64,000 bases of DNA, taken from positions 61,566,001-61,630,000 of the forward strand of contig NC_086114.1 in NCBI RefSeq assembly GCF_963921235.1, read 5' to 3'. A program made the translations under genes and the position numbers. Each line of letters opens with the position of its first letter. The first letter of the stretch is position 1. Below, in pieces: positions 14,122-50,723 of this stretch. This DNA is from Mobula hypostoma (Eukaryota). The notes below the pieces were generated by a model. That model had not been told where the DNA came from and ran no database searches. It saw nothing but the letters and a program-made list of their open reading frames with translations.

Positions 14122-14213
14122 CTGTTTGTGATGAGCAGATTTGTTCTTTTCTTCCCATACAAAAGACAATGCGAACGATATCGCTCTCCATTAAGCTTTG
14201 CAATCTCCAACCT
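14122..14213 (-). CDS. VPS13C: VPS13C coding exon RLEIAKLNGERYRSHCLLYGKKRTNLLITN(R), start of C-terminal PH region
   Basis: ttcttgcag acceptor, 92 nt, gtacag donor; aligns with human NHIKKLEGETYRYHCAIPGSKKTILMVTNR (recalled). Confidence 0.92.
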
Positions 14214-15886: not shown

Positions 15887-18800
15887 TAGAAACAAGGAAA
15901 ATAGGTGCAGGAGTAGGCCATTCGGCCCTTCGAGCCTGCACTGCCATTCAGTATGATCATGGCTGATCATCCAACTCAGAACCCTGCACCTGCCTTCTCT
16001 CCATACCCCCGATCCCTTTAGCCACAAGAGCCACATCTAACTCCCTCTTAAATATAGCCAATGAACTGGTTTCAACTGTTTCCTGTGGCAGAGAATTCCA
16101 CAGATTCACCACTCTCTGTGTGAAGAAGTTTTTCCTCATCTCGGTCCTAAAAGGCTTCCCCTTTATCCTTAAACTGTGACCCCTCGTTCTGGACTTCCCC
16201 AACATCAGGAACAATCTTCCTGCATCTAGCCTGTCCAATCCCTTTACAATTTTATACATTTCAATAAGATCCCCCCTCAATCTTCTAAATTCCAGCGAGT
16301 ATAAGCCTAGACGATCCAGTCTTTCATCATATGAAAGTCCTGCCATCCCAGGAATCAATCTGGTGAACCTCCTTCATACTCCCTCTATGGCAAGAATGTC
16401 TTTCCTCAGATTAGGGGACCAAAACTGCACACAATACTCCAGGTGTAGTCTCACCAAGGCCTTGTACAACTGCAGTAGTACCTCCCTGCTCCTGTACTCG
16501 AATCCTCTTGCTATGAATGCCAGCATACCATTCGCCTTTTTCACCGCCTGCTGTACCTGCATGCCCACTTTCAATGACTGGTGTGTAATGACACCCAGGT
16601 CTCGTTGCACCTCCCCTTTTCCTAATTGGCCACCATTCAGATAATAATCTGTTTTCCCTTTTTTGCCACCAAAGTGGATAACCTCACATTTATCCACATT
16701 AAATTGCATCTGCCATGAATTTGCCCACTCACCTAACTTATCCGAGTCACCCTGCATCCTCTTAGCATCCTCCTCACAGCTAACACTGCCGCCCAGCTTC
16801 ATGTCATCCGCAAACTTGGAGATGCTGCATTGAATTCCCTCATCTAAGTCATTAATATATATTGTAAACAACTGGAGTCCCAGCACTGAGCCTTGCGGTA
16901 CCCCACTAGTCACTGCTTGCCATTCTGAAAAGGTCCTATTTATTCCCACTCTTTGTTTCCTGTCTGCCAACCAATTCTCTATCTACATCAATACCATACC
17001 CCCAATACCGTGTGCTTTAAGTCTGCACACTAATCTCCTGTGTGGGACCTTTCAAAAACCTTTTGAAAATCCAAGTATACCACATCCACTGATTCTCCCC
17101 TATCCACACTACTAGTTACATCCTCAAAAAATTCTAAGAAATTCGTCAGACATGATTTTCCTTTCACAAATCCATGCTGACTTTGTCCGATGATTTCACC
17201 GCTTTCCAAATGTGCTGTTATCACATCTTTGATAACTGACTCTAGCATTTTCCCCACCACCGATGTTAGGCTAACCGGTCTATAATTCCCCGGTTTCTCT
17301 CTCCCTCCTTTTTTAAAAAGCACGGTTACATTAGCCACCCTCCAATCCTCAGGAACTAGTCCAGAATCTAAAGAGTTTTGAAAAATTATCACTAATGCAT
17401 CCACTATTTCTTGGCCTGCTTCCTAAAGCACTCTGGGATGCAGACCATCTGGCCCTGGGGATTCATCTGCCTTTAATCCCTTCAATTTACCTAACACCAC
17501 TTCCCTACTAACATGTATTTCGCTCAGTTCCTCCATCTCACTAGACCTTCTGTCCCCTACTATTTCTGGAAGATTATTATGTCCTCCTTAGTGAAGACAG
17601 AACCAAAGTAGTTATTCAATTGGTCTGCTATGTCCTTGTTCCCCATAATCAATTCATCTGTTTCTGTCTGTAAGGGACCTACATTTGTCTTAACCAATCT
17701 TTTTCTTTTCACATATCTATAAAAGCTTTTACAGTCAGTTTTTATGTTCCCTGCCAGTTTTCTCCCATAACCTTTCTTCCCTTTCCTAATTAAGCCCTTT
17801 GTCCTCCTCTGCTGGACTCTGAATTTCTCCCAGACCTCAGGTGTGCCACTTTTTCTGGCTAATTTGTATGTTTCTTCTTTGGAATTGATACTGTCCCTAA
17901 TTTCCCTTGTCAGCCACGGGTGCACTACTTTCCCTGGTTTATTCTTTTGCCAAACTGGGATGAACAATAGTTGTAGTTTATCCATGCGATCTTTAAATGC
18001 TTGCCATTGCATATCCACCGTCAACCCTTTAAGTGTCATTTGCCAGTCTATCTTAGCTAATTCACGTCTCATACCTTCAAAGTTACCCTTAAGTTCTGAA
18101 CCGTTGTTTCTGAATTAATTATGTCACTCTCCATCTTAATGAAGAATTCCACCATACTATGGTCACTCTTACCCAAGGGGCCTCTCATGACAAGATTGCT
18201 AATTAACCCTTTCTCATTGCTCAATACCCAGTCTACCTGCTCTCTAGTTGGTTCCTTGACATGTTGGTTCAGAAAACCGTCCCGCATACATTCCAAGAAA
18301 TCCTCTTCCTCAGCACCCTTACCAATTTGGTTCACCCAATCGATACGTAGATTGAAGTCACCCATTATAACTGCTGTTCCTTTATGGCACGCATTTCTAA
18401 TTTCCTGTTTAATGTCATCTCCAACCTCACTACTACTGTTAGGTGGCCTGTACACAACTCCCACCAGTGTTTTCTGCCCCTTAGTGTTATGCAGCTCTAC
18501 CCATATCGATTCCACATCCTCCCGGCTAATGTCCTTCCTTTCTATTTCGTTAATCTCCTCTCTAACCAGCAATGTTACCCCTCCTGAATATTAAATATCC
18601 CTGAATGTTGAGCTCCCATCCTTGGTCACCCTGGAGTCATGTCTCTGTGATCCCAACTATATCATAATCATTAATAACTATCTGCACTTTCAATTCATCC
18701 ACCTTGTTACGAATGCTCCTTGCATTGACACACAAAGCCTTCAGGCTTGCTTTTACAACACTCTTAGCCCTTATACAATTATGTTGAAAAGTGGTCCTTT

Positions 18801-26234: not shown

Positions 26235-27198
26235 CGGCTAGGACATACATCACAAATGGTAAGGTCCTACAGAGTATTGAGGAACAGATGGACCTTGGTG
26301 TGCAAGTCCAAAGTTCCCTGTAGGTGTCAGTACAGAGATAATACAAAGCCGCATATGGGCTACAGGCCTTTACCAGTTGAAGCATTGAATACAAGATCAA
26401 CAAGGTTATGCTCCCATTTCACAAGATCTTTGTCAAACCTCAGATGGAGTACTATGTACAGTTCAGTTCACCACATTACAGGAAAGATATGACACTGCTG
26501 GAGAGGGTGCAGAGAAGATTCATCAGGAAGTTGTCTGTGATGGAAATGAGGACTGACTGTTTTCTTTGGAAAGAAGGAGGTTAACAGCAAATATGATTGA
26601 GGTATATTTAATTATGAAGTGTATAAGGCATATTACAGGAAACTTTATCCCTTATTGAAGGTAGGTAAAATGAGAGGACACAGATTTAGTTTTGGGGTAA
26701 GAGAATTAGAGGAGATTTGAGGGAGACTCAGTGAGTGATGAGTACCTGAACTGCATTGGCTGAGAAGCAGAGTCACTGAAGTGTGTAAACAAACATTTGC
26801 ATTGCCCCTGATAGAAGGCAATAGGCCAAGTACTGGAAGATGGGATTAATGTGGATGGGTGCCCACTGGTCAGCATGAGCCAAATGGTCTGTTTCTGCAT
26901 TGTCTGACTTAATCATCTAAATGTCATTTTACAATATTTCAGATCATGTAAACATTGGTCTATTATTCAACTGTAGAGCAAGACCAACAAAATAAAGATA
27001 TTTCTCAAAAAAATCAAACTATAACTGAATACAATAAAGCAAACTATAGAATCACAATTAAAATACAATCCATGTTTATTTTAAATATAGGTGATGATTA
27101 TTATTCATACAATATATGTGGAAATTAATAACCAGAATAGAAAAAGAACCAGCCAGACAGGAGGGTCATAAGATTAACTATTAGTGTTTCAGAATATA

Positions 27199-27976
27199 CA
27201 ATGGATTCCAGTTAATTAGGACACTTCATGACCAGTACATTTTGGCCCCGTTAAGTTTCATGGAAAGAGATACAAGGGTATTAACATTTAAAAGAGTAAC
27301 AAATTACATATTTAAATGAAATACAGAACAAATAAGAACATTACAATGCTACTGCAACATTATAAAACTGTGTATTGACTCTTAATAGTTATCCATGGAG
27401 GAATTCATTCAGTGTATGCTGTCATGTTCTTTTGATTGACTATAATTATCAAAATCAGCACAAACACCTAGTGCAGAAAATGGACTACCTTCATACAATG
27501 CTTTCAACGACTGCATCATCCAAATCTTAATCTTAAAGATGATTGTTGACACCTTTATATTCTTTGTAGATCCTACTTGTTGAAGTAGTGAAATTGTTTC
27601 ATTTTCACTCCTGGCCATTTCTGGCATTTCCAAGCCTGAATGCTTGAAGCCACGGTGAGCAAATTAGTTCTGAGTTGTCTTCCTGTTTATTTCTTTCCAA
27701 CTATCAGTGATGAAAATCACTGCTTTTTTAATGCAAACACATGCAACTAATGCTATTTAAAAACTGTTCACTCTAAGCACAGTGTAGTGTCTAACAGTCA
27801 CACAAGTGCATGCAAGTGATGCTAGTTAGAAACTGGTCGACAATCATCTCATGTTCCAATTTAGCACCATAGTGTCCCAAATAAAACAAAGGGAATCCCA
27901 GCTATTTTCTCAATTAGTTTTGTTCTTTAAGAGTTGGCCTAAATAAGCGGCTGCCCCAATTAACTAAAATCCACTG
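27199..27976. mobile_element. Tigger/pogo-type internally deleted DNA element
   Basis: TA|caatggattccagttaattagg...cccaattaactaaaatccactg|TA terminal inverted repeats. Confidence 0.7.
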
Positions 27977-28230
27977 TATTTCCTTCATGGAATTTCTTTC
28001 ATGGACTTTACAATTGGAATGTTTACTGTTGAGATGACAGATTCGTTTGTTTTGTCAAGTTTATCCAAAATGCAGAGTGACTCAAAATGGAATATAACAC
28101 TGTAATATATGATAGATTCAATAAATTTATATATTACAAATCTAAATGTATTTACATTTGGTGCCAATATGCAAAAATAAACAGATTACGAAAAGCAGAA
28201 AGGTAAAAAGTCTGAAAGACATTTGAAATC

Positions 28231-28245
28231 TCAATCCATATCGTG
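28231..28245 (-). CDS. VPS13C: Candidate alternative terminal exon of VPS13C (coding part HDMD-stop; short isoform lacking PH region)
   Basis: CTAAT branch-like motif (28275-28279), pyrimidine tract tctttcccttttctcttt, atgcag acceptor, then CAC GAT ATG GAT TGA in phase 0; non-repetitive context. Confidence 0.55.
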   Translation of the reverse strand, partial: HDMD

Positions 28246-28522
28246 CTGCATGTGTAAAGAGAAAAGGGAAAGACATTAGAATTTTGCCATATTAAAAGGT
28301 AAAGGATCATACGTTTTTCATTCAGCAATTTTTGGCAGAAGTAAAATAAACAAGGATTCAAAGTGAAAAGAAAGCTATTTATGTTGGGGCAGAGAGAGAG
28401 ATCGTTTAGAAGGGGAGGCACAAGAAGGCATTAACCATAACAAAGCAGCCTCCCATCTATTCCCATGATCATTGTAAGTCGCATTTAATTTCTAATACTA
28501 GCAATTACACTGTTAAGTATGT

Positions 28523-29025
28523 ACAGTACTCTGTAAAGTCTTAGGGTGCCTAAGGCTTTTGCACAGTACTGCATTTGTCAACGTGGAGTGGAGATCAGGC
28601 TTGTAAATCTGGTAGGAGCAAAGGATATTGGGGATGGCGAGGGTGAAGCACCACAGGAGGGGCAAGGGACAGGTGGCGAAGGACTGCCAGTGGCAGGGCG
28701 TGGCATGGGTGCAGACATACCCAGCCCCAAGGCACCAGGCAAGGTCATTTGATTCCAAACAATTGGTTTACTGATCGTTGCAGAATGTGTCTTTGGTGCT
28801 TCCCACAACCTCTCCTCTCCTTTCCACTTTTCCCAACCATGATTCCCTTCTCCCTGCCCCTTCCAACTCTCAGTCCACAGCAGAGACCCACATCAGAATC
28901 AGGTTTATCATCACTCATATGATTTTTTTTTTTTGCAGCAGTACAGAGCAATACATAAAATTACTACAGTACTGTGCAAAAGTCTTAGGCACCCTAGCTA
29001 TATTTTATATATGTATGTGTGTGCC
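28523..29025. mobile_element. Second copy of hairpin-ended MITE (inverse of 7027-7866, without the SINE)
   Basis: Reverse-complement similarity over ~450 bp; cagtact..taaagtcttagg..cctaaggcttttgcacagtactg terminus. Confidence 0.7.
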
Positions 29026-31639: not shown

Positions 31640-33080
31640 ATCACAAACAAGAGAAAATCTGCAGATGCTGGAAATCCAAACACACACAAAATGCTGGAGG
31701 AACTTGGCATCTATGGAAAAGAGTACAGTTGACGTTTTGGGGCCAAATCCTTCATCAGGACTGGGGAAAAATATGAGGAGTCAGAGTAAGAAGATGGGGG
31801 AGAAGGGAGGAAGAAACACAAGGTGATAGGTGAAACTGGGGGGGAAGGGGGGACAAGGGGAAGGGAGGGGGGAAGGGAGACAGGGGAAAGTAAAGAGCTG
31901 GGAAGTTGAATGGTGAAAGAGATACACGGCTGGAGAAGGGGGAAACTGATTGGAGAGGGCAGAAGGCCATGGAAGAAAGAAAAGGAGGAGGGGCACCAGG
32001 AGGTGATGGGCAGGTAAGGAGATAAGGTGAGAGGGGGAAATGGGAATGGGGAATGGTGAGGGGGGGGGAGGCATTACTGGAAGTTTGAGAAATTGATGCT
32101 CATGCCATCGGGTTGGAGGCTACCCAGATGGAATATAAGGTATTGCTCCTCCAAACTGAGTGTGGCCTCATCGTGACAGTAGGGGAGGCCATGGACTGAC
32201 ATGTTGGAATGGAAATGGAAAGTAGAATTAAAATGGGTGGCCACTGGGAGATCCTGTTTTTTCTGGCAGACAGAGCGTAGGTGCTCAGTGAAGCAGTCTC
32301 CCAATCTACGCGGGGTCTCACTACACCAGGAGCACCGCACACCGTAGATGACCCCAACAGACTCACAGGTGAAGTGTCGCCTCATAGTAGTGAGTGAGAA
32401 GGTGAGTAGTGAGCAGGTGTAGTACTTGTTCTGCTTGCAAAGAAAATGCCAGGAGGGAGATCAATGGGGAGGGACAAACGGACAAGGGAGTTGCATAGGG
32501 AGCAGTCCCTGCGGAAAGCAGAAAGCAGGGAGAGGAGGGTGGAGGTAAAGATGTGCTTGGTGGTAGGATCCCACTTGAGAAGGTGTAAGTTACAGGGAGA
32601 ATTATGTGCTGGACGCGGAAGCTCGTGGGGTGGTAGGTGAGGCCAAGAGGAACCCTGTCCCTGGTGGGCTGGCGGGAGAATGAAGTGAGGGCAAACGTGC
32701 GCGAAGTGGAAGAGATGCGGTTGAGGGCAGCATTGATGGTGGAGGAAGGGAATCCTCTTTCTTTGAAGGAGGAGAACATCTTCTTAGTTCTGGAATGAAA
32801 AGCCTCATTTTGAGTGCAGATGCAGGTGAATCGGAGGAATTGAGAGAAGGGGATGGCATTTTCACAAGTTACAAGGTGGGAAGAGGTATAGTCCAGGAAG
32901 CTGTGAAAGTCAGTGGGTTTATAATAGACATCAGTAGAAAAGCTGTCTCCAGAGATAGAGACAGAGAGATCGAGAAAGGGGAGTGAGGTGTCAGAAATAG
33001 ACCAGGTACATTTGAAGGCAGGGTGGACTGTTGGCTTCTGATGGCCTGCTGATCTCCTCCACCATTTTGTGTGTGTTGCA
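31640..33080 (-). mobile_element. Penelope-like retroelement, 5'-truncated, with GIY-YIG endonuclease pseudogene and decayed 3' hammerhead
   Basis: FTCESVGVIYGVRCSWC..ETPRRLGDCFTEHLRSV..PVATHFN..EQYLIFHLGSLQPDG (32074..32385); FKERGFP..PLGLTYHP linker; short inverted end 33026-33080. Confidence 0.88.
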
Positions 33081-34323
33081 TAAATGTGTTAGATACTGGA
33101 GAAGGAATCACCTAGGAAGAGAAAGTTAGGTCCAAGAACATTTTTAGTAGGACAGATAGAAGAGGTTTCAACAGATGAGTGCTTGCTACATAGAGATAGA
33201 GAGCCACAGGCCACATGGATGAGCTGTCAGCAACAGGAAAGGAGCTCATGGGGGCAGTGCTGCTGGCTGGATCCTCCACTGTGGTGGCAGAACTGGTGGC
33301 TCTAAAGGGGGCTAATGTCATGGGAAGGGTTGACATTAAACTAAAATTAAAGTTGTCTTGCTGGATTAGTGCACAAATGAAATACAACAATTAATGGAAA
33401 TTGCACAAGATAATTGGTAACTGACATCTTCCACTGTCCCAGCAAATCAGCTAACAATTTACAATTAATGGTGAAATCCCAACAACAGACTTTTGAGCAA
33501 TATCTTGGGACATAATGAGAGTGGTCAGATTCATAGATATTACTAAAATGGGAGCACTTGTGATCAGCAAACAAAACATCAAAAAAAATGAGGGCAATTA
33601 AAGAAATAAAATTCTCTTCAAGCAGTACGTCAGAACTTCAGCAAATGAAGCTAATGACAGTTTTTAGGTTGTGGAAATATGCCCTCAACAGAGTCACAAA
33701 TCTCTCCCCAAAAATGAGATACAGAACAAAAGTCAAGAAAATTGTATGGATGAAAAGGTAAATACATCAACACAAAATTTATTTTAGCAACCTGCATTTC
33801 CTGGTGCATGCACAGATGATATCGTTGTACTCTGGAAAATCACCACCAGTACAGGTGCCACACATGAGAAAAATGAGACATAAAATCTATGGTGATATTA
33901 CACTCAGCCATGACCAAGCACACCCATTCCACAGCAGCAGTCAAAGCAGGGAAAATGCAGAAAAAGGCTATTCAACCTTTGATGGTATGAACAAACACAG
34001 TTCAGAGAAAGGGGCAGCGGGGATGGACCCAACTAAATGAGAGGACAACGGGAATGGAACCAGCTCAGAGAGGGCAGTGGAAACACACCCAGAGAGGGGA
34101 GCGGAAATACACCCAGAGTGCAGAGCTGGGAAGGACCAATCAGCAAGTTCAAAGCAGTCAATGCCATCATGTGTTTCACTTATGCCATTTTAAATGCCAG
34201 AATTTGATGGCAGAACAACTTGAGAGTTGAAGCTTCATGTTTCAGAAAACTCAGATTTTATATATCTATTATAATTCAGCAATTTAATTTTTCTGCTTTT
34301 CGATGATTAGCAGCTCAGCTTAC

Positions 34324-34438
34324 CTCAAACAGGTGACAACCCTCAGATTCTCTTCGATTGTAGGGCCTGATAATCCCATCCTCACGAATATATCGAGGAG
34401 GGCGGAGTTTACTCACATCTTCAGTTGATTCCGCCACC
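34324..34438 (-). CDS. VPS13C: VPS13C coding exon (K)VAESTEDVSKLRPPRYIREDGIIRPYNRRESEGCHLFE
   Basis: tatacag acceptor, 115 nt, gtaagc donor; conserved RPPR...DGIIRPY motif. Confidence 0.96.
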
Positions 34439-46627: not shown

Positions 46628-46789
46628 CTGAAAAAACAAACATTTAGAAATAATTTTTTTACATGATGCAATATTGCAAACAACATAATGAGCCATCATG
46701 GAAAGCGGCTCAAAATATATATATGATAAGTTTTATAGAGCAATGAAAAAAAATAAGTCTCAAAACAAGGGAAGATAATGAAAATTTTC

Positions 46790-50021: not shown

Positions 50022-50559
50022 TTTATATGTGCTAATATTATTTTGTGACTATATGCACTATTGTGTGGTTGTATGTACTGTGTTTTGCACCTTGGTGCTG
50101 GAGGAACACTGTTTTGTTTAGCTGTATACATGTGTATGGCTGAATGACAATTTAACTTGAACTAGGTTAATAATGGGCACACCACCAATATCTGTGCAGT
50201 TTTGAGATATATCAAAAAAGAAATCAAAGTAATTAGTGTTGATATGATTAATATTGTTAATATACCGGGGCCTGATGGGGCAGTCACGGAGAGGAAGACA
50301 CAATCTTCAAGTACAAATTTAAAATCTTACTTCAAGACAGCACTTGATGCTGTGTCAATTGTTGACTTTAAACTGGAGTTGACTTTGAAGCTATTAACCA
50401 GAGGGACTAGGGACATGGGTAGAAGATGGCGTAAGGATTCACGGTTTCATCCAATGACACAACTGGACCAAAGACCAGATCGTCTTTGCTGTTGTCCTCA
50501 ACTTTTACAATTAGTGTTGCACAAAACTGTCCTCTTTGAAAAACAGGAATTCTACTTGC

Positions 50560-50723
50560 CCGTAAAAAGCCTTTTCCTCCTTTGGCCAAACTTTCCCCAA
50601 AGTCCTTGGGTTGACGGTTCATTTCTTCCCTACGTTTCTGCTGATACTCTTTATCCATTGTGATAGCAGCTAAACCTTTTCCAACTGAGCCTGTGATTCG
50701 CGATACCACACCAGCTGCACCGC
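50560..50723 (-). CDS. VPS13C: VPS13C coding exon (G)GAAGVVSRITGSVGKGLAAITMDKEYQQKRREEMNRQPKDFGESLAKGGKGFLR
   Basis: ctgcag acceptor, 164 nt; ends at non-canonical GCAAGT donor; overlaps ORF 50407..50709; phase 0 joins GVVGG exon. Confidence 0.95.

Follow-up and report, generated by a model that had tools for sequence, protein, structure and literature searches.

VPS13C is a bridge-like lipid transporter, the loss of which causes Parkinson's disease of early onset. Its short isoform has, to our knowledge, been ignored by almost all cell-biological work. As a type, this isoform is already known: annotation pipelines report short VPS13C proteins in dozens of species, and the human variants 1B and 2B were reportedly described in 2004 by Velayos-Baeza et al., in their Genomics article on the VPS13 gene family. 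Functional work on VPS13C uses long variants, such as variant 2A, and the C-terminal DH-like/PH region was found to bind lipid droplets, mainly via its ATG2-like helix (PMC6168267). This helix sits upstream of the splice junction considered here. According to a review, the splice variants of the VPS13 paralogues are still to be investigated (PMC8325632), and our literature search found no paper on the tail of the VPS13C short isoform or on its evolution. A comparable situation is described for isoform B of VPS13A, in which the alternative exon 69 gives a PH-less protein with an acidic tail; XK binding is lost while the protein is still located at ER-mitochondria contacts (PMC9436381).

The locus compared here with these systems lies in a window of 64,000 nucleotides from Mobula hypostoma (contig NC_086114.1, positions 61,566,001 to 61,630,000). 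Within a 20-kb intron of a VPS13C gene, the original prediction had placed a four-codon alternative last exon leading to a PH-less isoform. We estimate at about 80% the probability that the VPS13C gene of this cartilaginous fish has here a true alternative last exon, orthologous to the exon of the short ('B'-type) isoforms of bony vertebrates.

As in the short VPS13C isoforms of mammals, birds, frogs and teleosts, the switch would follow ...LF[EQ] and would use an alternative terminal exon located in the same intron; the tail would be very short and acidic, with four codons as in birds, frog and teleosts, and about 130 C-terminal residues would be lost. However, the tail of the window gene is HDMD, whereas those of the other species are QELE, QELD or PDEE, with three more codons in mammals (QELEIQE). 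Furthermore, the window exon is found 6.1 kb into a 20-kb, transposon-laden intron, whereas those of sandgrouse and swordfish are found 0.74-0.85 kb into introns of 3.5-5.3 kb, and its untranslated region (UTR) bears a lineage-specific repeat, unlike the other short isoforms. VPS13A isoform B also relies on an alternative terminal exon just before the PH-domain exons, with a short acidic stretch and a stop, but it belongs to a paralogous gene. The arrangement is also that of a generic alternative last exon with intronic polyadenylation, in which the distal splice competes with a nearer acceptor that is followed by a separate poly(A) signal. Unlike in such generic cases, the coding part is tiny (15 nt including the stop) and would have persisted for over 400 million years.

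The identity of the gene was examined with the frog VPS13C protein P0015 (full length, 3,730 aa), which was reached via the conserved exon at 50721-50560. Its C-terminal part, used as tblastn query, detects collinear exons sharing 62-93% identity on the minus strand of the window (Table 1). Every one of the best database relatives of P0015 is named VPS13C. In the same way, the exons located after the junction follow the VPS13C pattern (IKKLxGE..., DW.Y.F..F), unlike the VPS13A-type pattern of protein P0038. By these sequence comparisons, the gene reads as VPS13C and not as VPS13A. The exon map is incomplete, with at least one further exon between 11758 and 2088. The 3' end of the exon 50723-50560 looks like a GC donor, CGG/GCAAGT (50554-50560, minus strand; here and below, a slash marks a splice junction); as the residues that come next (GVVGG...) are encoded near 46630, the intron in between would be of the GC-AG type.

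The constitutive exon 34437-34324, hereafter exon E, is presumed to be the donor exon of both the long and the short isoforms. It encodes VAESTEDVSKLRPPRYIREDGIIRPYNRRESEGCHLFE and ends with ...GGT TGT CAC CTG TTT GAG/GTAAGC (...GCHLFE) in phase 0. An intron of 20,110 nt separates it from the canonical exon starting at 14213. This intron holds long reverse-transcriptase-like open reading frames on the minus strand (32366-33088 and 15960-18590). Transposon insertions would account for the distance of 6.1 kb between the donor and the alternative exon, compared with about 0.8 kb in bird and teleost. The junction falls within the PH-like C-terminal domain (Pfam VPS13_C): positions 1-36 of the profile are encoded before it and 37-107 after it, so that the short form would have a truncated VPS13_C domain.

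Table 1. Features of the VPS13C gene in the window, in the order of transcription.
Feature	Positions	Strand	Basis
VPS13C exon	51194-51060	minus	tblastn
VPS13C exon	50976-50893	minus	tblastn
Conserved VPS13C exon	50723-50560	minus	tblastn
VPS13C exon	~46630-46580	minus	tblastn
VPS13C exon	~37480-37356	minus	tblastn
Exon E, constitutive (...RPYNRRESEGCHLFE)	34437-34324	minus	sequence + tblastn, P0015 residues 3552-3598
GT donor GAG/GTAAGC, common to long and short isoforms	34322-34323	minus	sequence
CTAAT, branch-point-like	28279-28275	minus	sequence
Polypyrimidine tract, 18 nt, unbroken	28273-28256	minus	sequence
Acceptor AG in ATGCAG, context CACATGCAG	28247-28246	minus	sequence
Candidate alternative last exon, coding part CAC GAT ATG GAT TGA (HDMD + stop)	28245-28231	minus	sequence
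3' UTR of the alternative exon, ~1.16 kb	28230-27070	minus	exact X1 contigs
AATAAA poly(A) signal	27080-27075	minus	sequence
Canonical next exon (RLEIAKLNGERY...ITN), first base A	14213-14122	minus	tblastn
Canonical PH-like-domain exon (RRVICASDEILCHLGCDWNYVFDEF...)	11878-11758	minus	tblastn
Canonical last coding exon (...LEEARLARQQQRLVKQKSLRFSKP, stop)	2088-1999	minus	tblastn

All the elements listed by the original prediction (CTAAT, pyrimidine tract, atgcag, CAC GAT ATG GAT TGA and AATAAA) were found on the minus strand where it had placed them. The pyrimidine tract is followed by ACACATGCAG, and no AG lies between CTAAT and the acceptor. The claimed in-frame fit to the exon ending in ...GCHLFE is also correct: exon E ends in phase 0 at 34324 and the HDMD tail is in frame with it. 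Besides the AATAAA, other poly(A) hexamers are present in the UTR at 27732 and 27691. Contrary to the original prediction, the stretch is not repeat-free. An interspersed repeat occupies about 27172-28011 of the 3' UTR and draws hundreds of contigs sharing 90-95% identity, with a very high summed depth and many internal joints in all four RNA-like runs described below. A self-blast of the window did not find any second copy of this repeat.

The same switch was looked for in other vertebrate proteins, using as queries regions of frog, rodent short-isoform and teleost proteins that end at the junction and inspecting the C-termini of the matches. At least 40 database proteins stop 4-7 residues past ...LF[EQ]. 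With the frog query, these include Ascaphus truei X2 (...SLFE/QELD), Anser (...DLFE/QELE), Colius X2 (tail HLQE) and Peromyscus X2 (tail QELETQE). With the rodent short-isoform query, the tails of eutherians (tenrec, hamsters, vole, pig, squirrel, whale, rhinoceros, hyaena, seal, bears and canids) are QELEIQE, QELEVQE, QEPEIQE, QELGTQE or QELEIQD, those of marsupials QELEIEE or QDLEIEE, and those of Falco, Accipiter and Calidris QELE or QELD. With the teleost query, Micropterus X2, Xyrichtys X3 and Perca end in ...DLFQ/PDEE and Haplochromis in PEEE, while Iconisemion has a longer tail, PEEDSPCSGDGS. Thus, the tail beginning with QELE, given in the original prediction for human isoforms, is real for mammals in general (...LFE/QELE(I/V/T)QE) and starts at exactly the same junction. 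The four-codon tail is the state found in teleosts, frog, birds and the window gene, with mammals three codons longer, and tail positions 2 and 4 are repeatedly acidic in groups ranging from teleosts to birds. With a short in-frame tail predicted at the homologous junction, the window gene fits this pattern. Among the best 120 matches listed per query, no chondrichthyan VPS13C protein appears, tetrapods and teleosts being found throughout.

Some database models differ from this pattern. Read-through tails starting with V at the same junction (VGIVLLT, VRVV, V, VCSFYR...), seen in P0011, P0198, P0400, P0343, P0437 and P0447-P0449, are distinct from the true short isoform. For the window gene, donor read-through was rejected; it would yield ...LFE-VS-stop. 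Among the birds, P0259 (Colius striatus, HLQE) and P0253 (Buteo japonicus, LEFFGI) deviate from the QELE or QELD of the others, which could reflect lineage changes or model errors. In P0151, a VPS13C model of Acipenser sinensis, the block GVVGG...STFQGIQR is present twice (around residues 3440-3560), and this raised its score in all three protein searches; the second block stems either from faulty annotation or assembly or from a tandem duplication of exons.

At the genomic level, the sandgrouse gene (L001) has a 5.3-kb intron after ...DLFE, in which a pyrimidine tract precedes CGCAG/CAA GAA CTG GAA TAA, 847 nt from the donor. The 3.5-kb intron of the swordfish gene (L002) holds CACATGCAG/CCA GAT GAG GAA TAA, 740 nt from the donor. 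With these two genomic exons and the PDEE/PEEE tails of teleosts, the conserved short/long switch turns out to be wider than initially proposed. The 9 nt of the acceptor context CACATGCAG are identical in the window and in swordfish, and the branch-like element TTCTAATGT is identical in the window and in the region upstream of the sandgrouse exon. The contexts (-50 to +15) of the 1,178 intron AGs of the window were scored against the bird and fish exons. The candidate acceptor holds rank 1 in the comparison with the bird, rank 6 with the fish and rank 1 when both are combined. In the reverse comparison, the AG that best matches the window site is, in each of the two foreign introns, that of the four-codon exon. 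No similarity was found beyond about 60 nt around the acceptor, and a blastn comparison of the sandgrouse intron with the window exon and its UTR yielded chance-level matches only; this loss is expected given the evolutionary distance. Less probably, the window exon could have arisen independently of the bird and fish exons: the nucleotide likeness is confined to about 25-60 nt around the acceptor and the four tail residues differ (HDMD compared with QELE or PDEE). The similarity is short, and we regard the support that these comparisons give to orthology with the bird and teleost exons as moderate.

Taken on its own, the sequence of the site would exceed chance only marginally and is suggestive at most. 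Using a rough acceptor matrix, the acceptor ranks 18th among 1,348 intron AGs. Exactly four codons and a stop follow 44 of 1,179 AGs of the intron; within this set, HDMD ranks first in similarity to QELD (BLOSUM sum of 10) and second in similarity to QELE. The joint chance expectation amounts to a few hundredths of a site.

Evidence for transcription comes from public sequencing runs. Runs holding the sequence 27000-28300 were sought, and four small Logan contig sets (X1-X4), presumed to be RNA, were aligned to 26500-29000. Record 7 of X1 (384 nt, depth 26) matches 27892-28247 without any difference and carries 28 unaligned letters past 28247. In the same way, record 29 of X4 (369 nt) matches 27907-28247 without any difference, with 28 letters past 28247. 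In both cases the overhang differs from the local intron and is non-genomic there. The side of the overhang was set by the '-' record convention, which was checked on record 4, whose joint (27333/27581) fits only if the start of the record has the higher coordinate. Exact contigs from X1 tile 27070-27333, 27312-27436, 27598-27779, 27765-27913 and 27892-28247, with a gap at 27437-27597 inside the repeat; neither 28264-28515 nor 26584-27003 has any depth, and no contig extends below 27070. From this tiling and the empty flanks, the transcribed block extends from the predicted acceptor to a point 5 nt beyond the AATAAA. The acceptor at 28247-28246 is used in RNA, and the alternative exon has its own poly(A) signal, at which the transcript ends. 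The predicted use of the exon is thereby borne out, the contigs of X1 and X4 leaving the genome at the AG, with empty flanks in X1 and coverage stopping past the AATAAA. The unique 5' part of the exon (28012-28245) is complete in three RNA-like runs of one organism (A) and partial in RNA-like runs with two more organism labels from two other studies.

These contigs might instead be genomic DNA or unspliced pre-mRNA, with boundaries due to accidents of assembly. The RNA status of the runs is a guess, and low-depth contigs of X3 (27939-28333 and 28310-28484) run unspliced across the acceptor; such contigs probably stem from pre-mRNA or from some DNA present in the library. However, depth is zero in both flanks in X1 and X2, in X1 and X4 the departure from the genome falls precisely on the AG and the overhang measures 28 nt in both, coverage stops 5 nt past the AATAAA, and genuine DNA runs from these organisms exceed the present ones in size by a factor of more than 10. 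We consider this explanation extremely improbable, and genomic contamination was rejected as the source of the contigs. A poison cassette exon leading to nonsense-mediated decay was also rejected: coverage runs 1.16 kb to the poly(A) signal, and the exon is terminal rather than a cassette because no joint leads on toward 14213 or to any other downstream exon.

Exon E is probably the upstream partner of the alternative exon, judging from the length of the overhang and a shared AG. Exon E ends in GAG and the intron in CAG, so that a spliced match runs two bases past the junction, which places the junction at 28245. As Logan graphs are made of 31-mers, 28 + 2 gives 30, i.e., k-1. An overhang of k-1 is as expected from a graph branch at which a shared exon has two continuations with different first bases; indeed, the alternative exon starts with C and the canonical one at 14213 with A. 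Alternatively, the unit 28245-27070 could be part of another transcript, for instance an lncRNA within the intron or an RNA driven by a repeat, with an upstream exon other than exon E. The join to exon E is drawn from the number of overhanging letters and the shared AG rather than from their sequence, and the UTR contains an expressed repeat family. However, two runs have an overhang of precisely 28 nt, which fits a shared exon ending in AG but not in CAG, like exon E, and the reading frame gives a tail resembling the annotated VPS13C isoforms of other vertebrates. A separate transcript therefore seems very unlikely.

The exon could also be used only as noise of splicing and polyadenylation, at cryptic low-level sites, with a coincidental likeness to QELE and PDEE. 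The rank of the acceptor (18th of 1,348 by a rough score), the 44 AG sites giving a four-codon tail by chance and the large share of repeat in the UTR would all suit this explanation, and the contigs carry no abundance or isoform ratio. Against it, the k-mer depth of the X1 junction contig is 26 and the junction recurs in a second sample. Furthermore, the junction, the four-codon length and the acidic positions 2 and 4 are seen again in groups from teleosts through birds, and in comparisons between species the splice contexts pick each other as best match. We therefore judge mere noise unlikely.

Under the preferred reading, that of a genuine alternative last exon, two splice choices would be available after exon E: the distal exon at 14213 or the intronic acceptor leading to 28245. 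The distal choice would skip 20.1 kb and give the long isoform with the C-terminal PH-like domain (Pfam VPS13_C). The proximal choice would join ...CACCTGTTTGAG, at the end of exon E, directly to CACGATATGG, at the start of the alternative exon. The resulting short message would encode HDMD and a stop, followed by the 1.16-kb 3' UTR, with cleavage and polyadenylation after the AATAAA at 27080-27075. As the stop would lie in the terminal exon, nonsense-mediated decay is not expected. In the short product, the last ~130 residues, corresponding to about two thirds of the VPS13_C/PH-like domain, would be swapped for a four-residue acidic tail, while the lipid-transfer rod, the VAB domain and the ATG2-C-like region would be retained. 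The short protein may be made and be differently targeted, or have a changed partner. The acidic codons (GAT, GAA and GAG) could equally be kept as a purine-rich splicing enhancer.

What is new is the presence and the use of the short-isoform exon in a cartilaginous fish, as well as a four-codon acidic tail and a branch/acceptor sequence that appear common to jawed vertebrates. The persistence of the exon, of its branch and acceptor signals and of the acidic tail from sharks to mammals speaks for a function of the PH-less isoform and against mere noise of annotation. For genome annotation, the locus is an example of a coding exon that is beyond the reach of any method based on open reading frames. 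The conserved exon also provides a comparative handle on the sequences controlling the switch between the PH-less and the PH-containing forms. More speculatively, and with rather low confidence, this switch could be an ancient, selected device of all jawed vertebrates, perhaps shared with VPS13A isoform B and older than the duplication separating VPS13A and VPS13C, the x-[D/E]-x-[D/E]-COOH tail being itself under selection. If so, this tail (HDMD, QELE, QELD or PDEE) could be either a C-terminal motif or a splicing enhancer that sets the ratio of the two forms, and the short isoform of VPS13C would have its own site of action.
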